DNA of 64,000 bases from Phaeosaccion multiseriatum (GCA_965112735.1 OZ218953.1:2480001-2544000); one strand, 5' to 3'. Positions 18,614 to 41,053 are shown, counted from the first letter of the stretch. Notes: generated from the letters alone by a model not told the origin. Numbers and translations are program-made.

Positions 18614-21600
18614 TCATTGACAATCGCCAGCGCCACTCCCCGGCTCCGCCCCGCTTGCTGGTGTCAGGCCTGTTTCTCCTTCCTCTTCCCCTCCCCCTCC
18701 CCCTTCCTCTTCCCCTCCCCCTCCCCCTTCGGGCCCTTCTACCCCTCCTGGCGCTGCCGCAGCCGCAGCCGCAATGTTGGCCTTGGCTGCCCGAGCCTGC
18801 AAGTCCTCCCTCTCCATCTTGGCGTCTTCGGCCTCCTTCAGCACCGCCCAGCGGCTGCGATTGGCCTTGAGCTGTCCCAGCCAAATGGCACCCGCTGGCA
18901 GCAGCCCCGCCAAGTCGTCGTAGAACGGTTCCATGAAGCTCACGATGGCCAGCTGTAGACACGGGAGGGAGGGAGGGAGGGAGGGGCGAGGGAGAGGGAG
19001 GGAAGGAGAGGGAGATTGTGTGGTTTGAAAGATGAGTGAAAGGAGTAGCAGTAGCACGGGCCGGGGCAGGCAGCGCTACGCTGTCACACCATCATTCCTC
19101 TCCCCCAGAACGACCACCATCACGCTCAGTCCTCGACGCAGCCACTGACTGCTCTGCCTGCTTCTGGTATCACCAACCGCCACTGCTGCCTGCTGGTACA
19201 AGTACATGTAAGTCTAACACCGACCCACCCACCCACCCACCCACCCAAGTATGACAGCCTACCTGCGCGTTCGGGATCGGGCCCGTGGGTACGGTGACAG
19301 GAAGCATGAGCTCCTTCTCCCTCTCTGCCTGCACTTGGAACTCATCCAGTACGCGCTTGGTCCATTGGCAGCACACGCGCCACTCGCGGCCCAGAGAGGA
19401 CAGGTCGGCGGCATGTAGCAAGGAGTTGAACACCACCTGAGAGGAGGGGTAGGGAGGGGAGGAGAGGGGGGATCAATCTTTCTATCGATCCATCCATAGA
19501 TCTAGCTATCAGGCTACCTATCCGCCTGCACCAAATACAGCAGCAACGACAACAACAACAACAACAACAACAACAACAACAACAATAACAACAACAACAA
19601 CAACAACAACAACAACAACAACAACAACAACAACAACAACAACAACAACAACAACCCCAACCCCCAAAAAAAAAAAGCAGCAGCAACAAAAGCCCTGCTT
19701 CCACTCCTCCTCACCTGCCGATCATTGCCACTGAGCTCCAAGCCCTTCCACTCCTGCCCGTGCCTCTTCATGGCCATGGGCGCCAGCCCCGCCATCTGCA
19801 ACTTCTTCATGGCAGCGGCGAAGTAGCTCTCTTCCTGGGTCTCCTCCCCCTCCTCTGCCTCCTCCTCGTCCCCCTCCCCCCCCTCCCCTTCCTCTTTCTC
19901 CTCCTTCCTCCCCCCCCCCCCCTCCTCCTCCTCCCCCCCCTGCGGTGCCAGTGCCCCCAAGTGGTGCAGATGCTGCTTCGTCTGCCCCGCCCGATGGTAC
20001 TCTCTCCATAGCTCCTCCACTGAGGCGAGTCTCTGTGCGTCACAGAGCTGCTGCGCCGACCGGAGCGTGTTGGCCTGTACTGCCAACAGCTCCTTGTGCT
20101 GCACCACCAACTCCTGTAGACGGGCGGCGTCGGTCATGTGAAGCGACATATCGGTCGCCAAGATGCCCTGGATTATCATTTTTCTGCGTGCGTGCGTGCG
20201 TGCGTATGTGTGTGCACGCGTGTGTGCGTGGGTGGGGTGGGTGGGAGGAGAGGGGTGGGAGGGGGAGGGTCAGTTGGTTGATTGGGCGAGGGAGGGCAGT
20301 GAGGCGGTGAGTCAGTATGCCAGTAGGCAAGGAGCGGGTGCGACCTATGAGACGAGTGACTTATACTTTGACTTGACACTGCTTGACACTGCTTGACACT
20401 GCTTGACATTGATTGACGTTGATAGACTTGCCTGATTTTGGGGCTCATGACCCCACTCATGACGTTGTATCCGGGCTGGCGCAGGATTTGGAACATGCTG
20501 TGGTGGGGTTTAGTTGGTGTTTAGGTGGACAGAGAGAGAGAGAGAGAGAGAAAGAGACACACAGAGAGAAGGGGGAGAGAAGAAAGGGAGACAGTGTAGG
20601 CAAGCAAAGTCAATTCGGCAGCGGGGAAGGGAGAACGGGGGGGGGGGGGGGGAGCAAGTCACAGAGAGCAGCCATTTGATTCCCGCTTCTCTTCCTCGCT
20701 GCCTCTTCGATGCATGATGCCGCGGTCGACAAGCGTCGCCCCCCATCCTCCTCCTCCTCCCCCCTCCCCCCAGGTTCCCTCCCTCCCTCCCTCCCTCCCT
20801 CCCTCCCCTCACGCACTGACGCACTCACGTGGCAATGTGGTGGTGCTCGAGAGGCGACTGATCGTTGTACTTGATGGCGAGCGGGCTATGTGTGGCCACA
20901 AGGAACGCGTTGTTCACCCCCGGGTGTGCGAGGTCATGGCAAAAGGCCGCCACGAGCAACGCCACCTCCTCGGACTGAGATGGAGATACACACACGAGTA
21001 CGCACACGCCCAGGGGAGAGAGGAGAGAGAGAGAGAGAGAAGAGAGGAGGGGATGGGAAGAAACGGAGAAGACAGGGGAAAGGGAGAGAAACGAAGTGAC
21101 ATAGAGTGGCGCGTGACGTCGAAGTAGGGCAAGCGTGTCCACACAAACGATTGATTGACAAACCACACGACATCCCCAGAAAGACTAGATACAAGCTCGC
21201 GGGGCGAGGGAGAGAGAGAGAGAGAGAGAGAGAGAGAATGAGATAATAAAACAGACAGCGAGAGAGAACAGGAAGAGGCTCGCAGAGACTCACCTCCTCG
21301 AGCAGGCCTGAGGCCCCAAAGCCGATGAGCGACAGATACACGGCGTGCATGACATCGACAGCGTGGTACATGTTGTGATAGGTGGTGGAAGCCGTGAAGG
21401 ACCCACCAGAACCTCTCGCAGCCCCCGCGCCGTTGAGCTTGTTCTTGTTGTTGCGCCCCATGCGAGCGCCCACCGCTCGTGCAAAGCGCGAGAAAACGGT
21501 CACATCAAGGTTGAACTTGGCCGGCAGGGGTGTATCTCCCATGATGCTGAGGGCCAGCAAGGGGAGCTCGTGCAGAGGCACGCTAAACACGTCGAATTGC

Positions 21601-39600: not shown

Positions 39601-41053
39601 CGTCTCCAGCTGATCAGGAGGAGGGAGAGGAGGGAGAGGAGGGTCAGAGCAACACCGTGATGTGGCGGGTAGATGGCGGCAGATGGCGGTCGAATAAGTC
39701 ACGGATCGGAGTGTTCGCCCAGCAATAGCCAGACTCTCACGACATTTGAAAGCCTCTCCCCTCTCCATCGGTGGATGCGCTGACGCTGCACACGACAGTA
39801 TTCTCTTCCGCCAACGCGGACGAGCGATGCGCAGTAGCCACTGCTGCTCACGTCACATGCCACCCAGTCCGTCCAAACAAGCAAAAACAAGCAAGCCTAA
39901 AAGAAGGAACCACAACAGGCGTATCAACGACCAAGGCCTGGCCTACCCACCCACCACCTACCTGTGAGATGTGCCTGACGTTGACCCTCCGAATGGGCAC
40001 ATAGCCTGGCACCTTCTCCACCCGTACGCACATGTCGCCATACACCTCTACCGCCGTGAAACCCTCGTGCCGAATGAACTTAAAGGCCGGCTCACTGACA
40101 ATCACCTGCCCCTGCTTGCAGTGGTGCTCCGCCTGAAACGCCTGCAGCAGCGGCTCCCCCACGGCAATGTACTCCATACGCTTGTGCACCCCTCCCAAAT
40201 GCAGCACCGCCACGTTGCCCATGCCAATGCCAATTTTGACACCCATCTTCACGTCTTTGGCCAAAATACAGTCGTGCAGCTCCTCTTGAATGCTAAAGGC
40301 GCACTGAGTCGCCATGCGCATCTTCCGCTCCATCAGCACCGACCCGGTGTTGCGGTTGCTGTCGCCACCGGCTGCTGCGGAGAGGGGCGAATGCCCCAAG
40401 TCCGCGGGAGTGCTCTGGCTGAGGCCACTATTCTCTCGCTCCATTCCTCTCTTTCTCGGCCCTGCCCACATGCCGGCTCGTGGTCCCTCCCCTCCCTCCT
40501 CCCCCTCTTTGGGTTGGAGGGGCCACAGGACGATCATCGCATCGCCCGCAAACTTGAACACGTCTCCTCCCTCCCGTGCAATGATTCGCACCTGCAGCAT
40601 GATCACACAGAGGGCGTAAGAAGGAGGAAGATGGAAGGTCACACACGTGGGAAGGAGGATGGATCACATACGCTTTTGAGTTGCTCTGCAACTACTTTCC
40701 CCACACGAACTTGATCCACCCCGCACACTCGCTCGCTCTCTCTCACGCCTCCTCACACACAACACACTCACCATCTGTCCAAAGTAGGCATTGAGATGCT
40801 TGGCTAGTCCTTCCACCCCTGCCACAGATACGCCCTCTCCCGCAGCCCCGGTACTGCTAGAGCTCGCCTGATTGGCTTGAGACTCCTCCTGCAGCATCAT
40901 CGCCTCAGAGAGGGCGGTGAAGCCGCTCACATCGGCAAACACGCACACCGTCTCGTGGCGCTGCCGCCTGGGAAGTGTGGCTTCATTACTGTCGACCAGC
41001 TGCGTGACGATCAGGGACGGAACGTACGAAGCGACTGTGTCTATCCATCTCAT
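18614..41053 (-). CDS. Giant soluble adenylyl cyclase (ADCY10-like C1-C2) / STAND NTPase / PH / C2 / GYF_2 / class I cyclic-nucleotide phosphodiesterase fusion, ~4775 aa
   Basis: 26 exons traced: 41053-40772, 40591-39962, 39609-39496, 38836-38666, 38446-38243, 37981-37832, 37596-37465, 37222-33628, 33390-32170, 31802-29980, 29701-29279, 28965-28652, 28374-28315, 28041-26829, 26573-26493, 25820-25465, 25152-25052, 24799-24267, 24027-23065, 22350-22212, 21922-21294, 20974-20829, 20497-20432, 20183-19715, 19436-19263, 18952-18614. Total 14328 nt with every phase matching. Cyclase motifs: [45 protein letters not shown]. NTPase motifs: [21 protein letters not shown] motifs: [39 protein letters not shown]. 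Confidence 0.85.
19546..19654. repeat. (ACA)n microsatellite in intron
   Basis: Near-perfect CAA run in intron 24 of the cyclase-PDE gene. Confidence 0.95.
22375..22658. repeat. 36-bp minisatellite, 7 full copies and 1 truncated copy
   Basis: Unit GAATGAGGGTATTGGGCGCGTGTGGGTGAGGGTAGT starts at 22375, 22411, 22447 and so on to 22627; intronic; no spacers. Confidence 0.95.
25840..26310. repeat. Compound (GGA)n/(TAG)n microsatellite in intron
   Basis: GGA runs flanking a ~300-bp interrupted TAG run in intron 15 of the cyclase-PDE gene. Confidence 0.95.
38846..39350. repeat. (GTGTG)n/(GT)n satellite in intron
   Basis: About 500 bp of GTGTG pentamer mixed with GT dimer, filling intron 3 of the cyclase-PDE gene. 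Confidence 0.95.

Follow-up and report, generated by a model that had tools for sequence, protein, structure and literature searches.

Proteins that join a class III cyclase and a class I phosphodiesterase (PDE) in one chain are known from streptophytes, in which CAPE (COMBINED AC with PDE) has been proposed to exert local control over cyclic AMP (cAMP) (PMC5159850, PMC8115329, PMC11032487) and controls sperm motility in plants (PMC11032487). CAPE displays an N-terminal PDE, membrane helices and a single C-terminal cyclase domain, and CAPE-like proteins, which have been judged independent, are also found in the oomycetes Saprolegnia, Achlya and Thraustotheca (PMC8115329). Thus, the stramenopiles already offer a precedent for the fusion of an adenylyl cyclase (AC) to a PDE, though in the CAPE layout. 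The other closely comparable system is the soluble adenylyl cyclase (sAC) ADCY10, in which the cyclase domains are followed by a P-loop/STAND module, and from which alternative splicing generates a truncated 53-kDa and a full 187-kDa form, with more isoforms predicted (PMC12802110). Here we describe a locus from the stramenopile alga Phaeosaccion multiseriatum, which runs from position 41053 to 18614 on the minus strand of a 64-kb stretch of DNA (hereafter the window) with a eukaryotic, GC-rich composition (~59% GC). It is likely that this locus is a single 22.4-kb gene, which is transcribed in full length and encodes one soluble protein of ~4,775 residues. In this predicted protein a C1-C2 pair of sAC-type cyclase domains at the N-terminus would be linked, via a STAND NTPase and PH-like, C2-like and GYF-like modules, to a PDE at the C-terminus.

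Like CAPE, the predicted protein unites a class I PDE with a class III cyclase in a single polypeptide, and fusions of this kind have arisen more than once. Unlike CAPE, it has the cyclase first, in the form of an sAC-type C1-C2 pair, shows no predicted membrane segment, and carries the STAND NTPase and the PH/C2/GYF-like modules between the two enzymes. As the domain order and make-up differ, an independent origin from CAPE is the natural reading of the sequence. A preliminary description of this locus had named streptophyte CAPE as the known AC+PDE fusion; the PDE-first layout that it gave for CAPE holds, but the CAPE-like proteins of oomycetes have to be set beside it (PMC8115329). In the full-text literature that we searched and among the Atlas neighbours we found no instance of an sAC-type C1-C2 pair combined with a STAND module, targeting modules and a PDE in the absence of a membrane anchor, and none of the neighbouring Atlas clusters joins a cyclase to a PDE. 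Hence, while both the cyclase-PDE fusion and the sAC with a STAND module are known, the reverse-order, non-membrane sAC-STAND combination appears to be new. Synthesis and breakdown of a messenger also reside on one chain, usually under reciprocal regulation, in the GGDEF-EAL proteins (c-di-GMP) and in RelA/SpoT (ppGpp); their folds and messengers are unrelated to those of the cyclase-PDE protein, and the likeness is one of analogy only.

The gene model was obtained by picking splice sites in a base-by-base reading of the minus strand, independently of the earlier exon list, and by then joining the exons with a script. The resulting frame comprises 26 minus-strand exons (E1 to E26; Table 1) and 14,328 nucleotides (nt), or 4,775 codons, and extends from an ATG at 41053 to a TGA at 18616-18614 with no internal stops and with all phases consistent. 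The introns (I1 to I25) measure 180-714 nt, and all of them are of the GT-AG type except for a single GC-AG intron (24 versus 1; I23, CAG/GCAAGT); the longest non-coding gap in the gene is the 714-nt tandem-repeat intron. Both the number of exons and the 14328-nt frame given in the preliminary description were thus arrived at a second time, as were its four junctions 29279/28965, 28315/28041, 23065/22350 and 22212/21922, and its statement that neither a stop codon nor an intergenic-like gap separates the cyclase from the PDE agrees with the absence of internal stops and the maximal gap of 714 nt. Introns I1-I7 (E1-E7, 40772-37465) are all in phase 0, so that each exon of this region is a multiple of three. 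Many exons of the gene are phase-symmetrical, including E13, which could be skipped without a change of frame.

Low-complexity linkers account for 48% of the protein. Purine richness and a shortage of T make long open frames easier to come by on the coding strand, and for this reason the stop triplets of every long exon were tallied frame by frame, the chance of an open frame being approximated as (2/3)^N. In each of E8, E9, E10, E14 and E19 the coding frame is free of stops and the other two frames contain many (Table 1); the low-complexity linker exons are therefore not spacers but reading frames that have been maintained. A frame plot of GC content at third codon positions was uninformative in the P. 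multiseriatum genome. On the coding strand the exons are G-rich or purine-rich and most introns are C/T-rich. When splice sites were scored with leave-one-out matrices and ranked among the local candidates within +-300 nt, 23 of the 25 donors and 18 of the 25 acceptors took the first rank, including all four sites of the link from E12 through E13 to E14.

Several of the introns show features of their own. Intron I8 (33391-33627; 237 nt, GT..AG) is a multiple of three and stop-free in frame, such that a 1,722-codon open frame passes through it and its retention would preserve the frame. The bulk of I19, the longest intron of the gene, consists of a 36-nt unit repeated 7.8 times with 97% identity (window positions 22374-22652), followed by a long (GA)n tract. 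Intron I16 harbors a tandem repeat of 10-11 nt with the plus-strand unit ATCCACTGCC in 7 copies (window positions 25384-25455), whose words reach a depth of 5,600-105,000 in four DNA runs as against ~15-500 alongside; it is therefore a member of a very high-copy repeat family in the genome. An exact 13-mer, GTATCACCAACTG, occurs in two minus-strand copies, one in I14 (26726-26738) and one at 13637-13649, where none is expected, and the I14 copy coincides with breaks in the DNA contigs and a rise in depth (loose ends at 26740).

Domains were called exon by exon and not on the spliced protein. The best solved match to the cyclase exons is human ADCY10, with E2 corresponding to ~residues 90-197 of its C1 domain and E5 to residues 343-409 of its C2 domain (E-value 1.2e-5), in the correct order. 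The K and D of the KFAGDA motif align with Lys95 and Asp99 of ADCY10, and the EYTV motif aligns with Thr405. Further cyclase motifs of the spliced protein are ones that we take to be the equivalents of Asp47, Lys334, Asn412 and Arg416. Searches of solved structures with E1, E4 or E6 singly gave no match to ADCY10, and the likeness of E1 to the N-terminus of sAC was judged by eye only. A Kyte-Doolittle scan (19-residue window) recovered no convincing membrane segment and just two marginal windows (1.70 and 1.66), which fall on a poly-Ala tract and on the Walker B strand; the earlier claim of a non-transmembrane protein accordingly stands. By these comparisons the predicted cyclase is sAC-like, i.e. 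an ADCY10-type C1-C2 pair, and not of the CAPE type. As in ADCY10, the N-terminal tandem of C1 and C2 is followed by a P-loop/STAND module and there is no membrane segment. The differences from ADCY10 are that ~1,600 mostly low-complexity residues intervene between C2 and the P-loop, that the protein is three times longer, and that the helical C-terminal region of ADCY10 is replaced by the PH-like, C2-like and GYF-like modules and the PDE.

The NTPase is detected in E10, which matches Pfam AAA_16 with 35.0 bits (cut-off 32.6) and whose Atlas neighbours are all AAA_16 clusters. The E12/E13 junction presumably lies within the helix that follows the winged helix of cyclase-type STAND proteins with an AAA_16 domain (RR.LH..IA..LE). 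No TPR or other helical-repeat family was found with Pfam in any exon piece downstream of the NTPase. We also considered a cNMP-binding domain in E9, for which there was no Pfam match at E<=1; this is weak evidence against a split domain, and the candidate was dropped.

At the C-terminal end, E22, E24 and E25 match Pfam PDEase_I with E-values of 1e-20, 5e-5 and 1e-10 respectively, and the PDE domain shows the metal-site motifs YHN..H, HD..HPG, LEHHH, ILATDM and HAADLS. Its closest named relative is a protein fragment from the brown alga Hapterophycus canaliculatus (P0001). The spliced PDE is colinear with it over E21/22, E22/23, E23/24 and E24/25 (E-value 3e-73), which confirms these splice junctions. 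The best solved matches of the Hapterophycus fragment are the catalytic domains of PDE4B/4D (E-value 3e-39) and, judged through it, the nearest solved relatives of the predicted PDE appear to be the cAMP-specific PDE4 enzymes; a solved-structure search with E21 alone gave no relevant match. Unlike PDE4, the predicted protein has no UCR regions, bears a long acidic insertion in the catalytic domain, which the Hapterophycus fragment has at the same place, and shows an N-terminal extension with the GYF-like, C2-like and PH-like modules. In four brown-alga-like contigs from relatives (L001, L003, L004 and L005) the PDE-start exon begins with ..ARALMHGP.., and the public Hapterophycus protein begins at the internal Met of this sequence; its annotation was probably truncated at the 5' end by a short contig.

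The PH-like module spans E15-E16 and the C2-like module E17-E19. Almost all of the named Atlas neighbours of E16 belong to the PH-family clusters (top score 0.89), a lead only, and AlphaFold2 models made without an alignment were too poor for use (pLDDT 41 for E16 and 38 for E18). Contigs L003 and L005 of the relatives contain, 0.6-0.8 kb ahead of the PDE-start exon, an exon with 49% identity to the GYF-like peptide (YGPFP..AHNAGY..). As this exon, lying upstream of the PDE, reads unbroken across the position of the E20/E21 junction in both contigs, the pairing of the GYF-like segment with the PDE is, on this comparison, conserved and the junction is confirmed. Furthermore, E21 contains both the C-terminal half of the GYF-like segment and the beginning of the PDE, and E20 has no in-frame ATG ahead of the GYF core. 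The case for continuity from the predicted C2-like module to the PDE is strong. The links from E14 to the PH-like module and from there to the C2-like module are formed by short, typical, pyrimidine-rich introns. The relatives' contigs, at only 2.5-4.2 kb, are too short to extend to the NTPase.

The weakest link of the gene is the one between the end of the NTPase and the PH-like module (28652-28041), where E12 is joined via the 60-nt E13 to E14. The splice sites involved are nevertheless all first in local rank (E12 donor GAG/GTAAGG 1/31, E13 acceptor 1/47, E13 donor 1/30, E14 acceptor 1/49), and sites scoring as high as the E12 donor and the E13 acceptor make up ~2.5% of GT and ~2.3% of AG dinucleotides gene-wide. 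The lengths of I12 (277 nt) and I13 (273 nt) are typical for the gene; the E12 donor and the E14 acceptor are both in phase 2, and E13, whose length is divisible by three, has no stop in this phase. From 41053 to 18614 the coding strand contains neither a complex AT-rich island nor an AATAAA. Such islands hold the 3' ends of the cyclase-PDE gene, of UTP15 and of a convergent FOP/LisH gene, all three of which were verified.

A number of observations weigh against a single protein with all of these domains. The Pfam Guanylate_cyc scores of E2 (18.6 bits, E-value 0.0015) and E5 (16.1 bits, E-value 0.0086) are below the cut-off of 21.9, because each exon carries only part of the domain. The PH match on E16 (13.1 bits, E-value 0.14) is below threshold and covers the C-terminal helix region only, the C2 match on E18 reaches 15.7 bits (E-value 0.018) against a cut-off of 22, and neither E20 nor E21 matches Pfam GYF_2 at E<=10, the GYF likeness having been recognized by eye. 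Of the previously claimed order, with two cyclase domains followed by NTPase, PH, C2, GYF_2 and PDE, the sequence of modules was reproduced and the AAA_16 and PDEase_I assignments are above threshold, but the other assignments are below it or, for GYF_2, lack a match. In a weak phmmer alignment the bicarbonate-site Arg176 of ADCY10 corresponds to Phe, with the Lys95 equivalent retained, which hints that bicarbonate control is perhaps absent. Regarding the gene model, the 1,198-codon exon E8 may conceal further introns, and the E12 acceptor is a weak AAG of rank 3/67. All four public runs containing the locus consist of DNA, their contigs extending over the introns without spliced joints or differences (23000-28999); the sole joints in them are repeat artefacts at 25.4 kb. 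Moreover, protein searches, which are blind to long proteins, recovered neither a full-length orthologue nor an annotated protein, and unstudied database entries may exist. Word-based protein searches with E10 came back blank for the whole exon (swamped by poly-Gly words), for the P-loop region and for the region from Walker B to GNP. A search of protein representatives with E21, which covers no more of the PDE than its least conserved third, returned 11 matches, all fragments or weak. A metagenome match to E16 (L002) was discarded as a spurious, low-complexity hit. Finally, read-through of the E12 donor runs into a TAA immediately (28650-28648). TATAAA occurs just twice on the coding strand from 41500 to 18000, and the two copies, at 28390 and 28282, flank E13; in-frame ATGs follow downstream of them at 28330 and 28026.

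Because of this immediate TAA, the flanking TATAAA and the in-frame ATGs, a separate PH-C2-GYF-PDE transcript is easy to draw. The locus would then consist of two adjacent genes on the same strand, a cyclase-NTPase gene ending at the TAA and a PH-C2-GYF-PDE gene (~1,750 aa) transcribed from a TATAAA promoter near E13 and starting at 28330 or 28026, with the in-frame join between them being coincidental. In keeping with such an arrangement the first of the two ATGs has G at both -3 and +4, the genome is compact (436 nt between the start codons of the cyclase gene and the divergent UTP15 gene), and outside repeats the GC content of the gene reaches its minimum (0.40) at 28308-28209. However, an in-frame TAA on read-through arises with any phase-2 GTAAG donor, and does so likewise at the E16 donor, and an equally AT-rich patch is present in I5, within the C2 cyclase domain. 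The E12 donor and the E13 acceptor both take the first rank locally, and E12, E13 and E14 agree in phase. The required end of the first gene, unlike the three verified gene ends, has neither an AT-rich island nor an AATAAA, and just ~260 nt would remain for its 3' untranslated region together with a promoter. We consequently regard two genes as unlikely. It is rather doubtful, though less so, that a single locus gives rise to several products, a view that overlaps with that of one gene in that the full-length fusion exists, the main forms being a shorter cyclase-NTPase or a PDE translated from an internal start. ADCY10 itself yields both truncated and full-length forms (PMC12802110), the TATAAA and in-frame ATGs at E13 could serve an internal start, and E13 is skippable in frame, as many exons are phase-symmetrical; the absence of an internal island resembling a 3' end argues against it.

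An alternative of a different kind is that one protein is made in which only one enzyme works, with the other domain serving regulation as a pseudo-enzyme, as would a cyclase-like nucleotide sensor attached to a PDE. The sub-threshold cyclase pieces, the Phe at the position of Arg176, the lack of solved-structure matches for E1, E4 and E6 singly and the large acidic insertion in the PDE could all be read in this way. Nevertheless, the residues that the tools could align are kept (the equivalents of Lys95, Asp99 and Thr405), the sequence contains the remaining cyclase motifs and every PDE metal-site motif, and the insertion recurs at the same position in the brown-alga homologue, so that we think it quite improbable that either enzyme is a pseudo-enzyme.

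Table 1. Exons and other features of the cyclase-PDE locus (window positions), with stop counts for the long exons
Feature	Position	Strand	Description	In-frame stops vs stops in other two frames	Chance
E1	40772-41053	-	Start codon and beginning of cyclase C1; first ATG after an in-frame TAG; donor ATG/GTGAGT rank 1/46		
E2	39962-40591	-	Remainder of C1; Pfam Guanylate_cyc E-value 0.0015; best PDB match human ADCY10 ~90-197		
E3	39496-39609	-	C1-C2 linker; phase 0, top-ranked splice sites		
E4, E5, E6	38836-38666, 38446-38243, 37981-37832	-	Cyclase C2; E4 and E6 by motif reading only		
E7	37465-37596	-	Short exon following C2		
E8	33628-37222	-	1,198-codon G/A/S-rich low-complexity linker; no Pfam family	0 vs 64	~5e-12
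E9	32170-33390	-	Linker with non-repetitive stretches, up to the helix preceding the P-loop	0 vs 26	~3e-5
E10	29980-31802	-	STAND-type P-loop NTPase; Walker A GESGAGKT, Walker B VVIDDAH	0 vs 34	~1e-6
E11, E12	29701-29279, 28965-28652	-	Helical/winged-helix-like end of NTPase module; no Pfam family		
Two TATAAA	28390-28385, 28282-28277	-	Flank E13; possible internal promoter		
E13	28315-28374	-	60-nt exon, purine-rich like other exons; weakest link of the one-gene model		
E14	26829-28041	-	404 codons, mostly low-complexity; acceptor rank 1/49	0 vs 20	~3e-4
E15, E16	26573-26493, 25820-25465	-	PH-like domain		
E17, E18, E19	25152-25052, 24799-24267, 24027-23065	-	C2-like domain, then low-complexity linker	E19: 0 vs 18	E19: ~7e-4
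E20	22212-22350	-	N-terminal half of GYF-like segment		
E21	21294-21922	-	C-terminal half of GYF-like segment and start of PDE catalytic domain, single exon		
E22, E23, E24, E25, E26	20974-20829, 20497-20432, 20183-19715, 19436-19263, 18952-18614	-	PDE catalytic domain with one acidic insertion		
AATAAA	18443-18448	-	166 nt past the stop codon, within AT-rich island 17981-18520		

The 3' end of the cyclase-PDE gene is approached by a convergent open reading frame (16369-17040, plus strand) encoding a FOP_dimer/LisH protein (E-value 1.5e-9) of the centrosome or basal-body type, and the AT-rich island at 17981-18520 is common to the 3' ends of both genes. The adjoining FOP/LisH gene and the ciliary genes named for the window do no more than hint that the cyclase-PDE protein might act in the flagellum. 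On the other side lies the divergent UTP15 gene (41490-43094, plus strand), which is intronless and encodes a protein of 534 aa with WD40 and UTP15_C domains (E-value 4.5e-44).

If the locus is a single gene encoding one soluble cyclase-PDE protein, the C1 and C2 domains would together form one active site producing cAMP, and the PDE at the opposite end of the chain would hydrolyze it, such that the signal would remain local and short-lived around the protein. The STAND NTPase might function as a nucleotide-driven switch or oligomerizer, and the usual helical sensor arm would have been swapped for PH-like, C2-like and GYF-like modules, which could tether the protein to membranes or to proline-rich partners. 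The gating by the NTPase and the recruitment through lipid/Ca2+ modules put forward in the preliminary description are likewise conjectural. We tentatively propose, as a possibility that stops just short of being probable, that this soluble 4,775-residue sAC-STAND protein, with its sensor arm replaced by targeting modules and a PDE4-like PDE, represents a third, independent cAMP maker-breaker, which as one molecule or as an NTPase-driven oligomer would give self-terminating local pulses of cAMP and which would be conserved, at least partly, in the brown-alga lineage.

How cAMP signals are localized is a central question in cAMP signaling, and animals use scaffolds that join cyclases and phosphodiesterases. 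A single-chain fusion achieves the same proximity of cyclase and PDE by covalent linkage. If true, a second layout of this kind, built on an ADCY10-type cyclase, would constitute an independent test of the single-chain idea. It would also offer a handle on the poorly understood function of the STAND module in sAC, and possibly a compact tool with which to shape cAMP pulses. It would further mean that the stramenopiles arrived at the cyclase-PDE fusion by more than one route.

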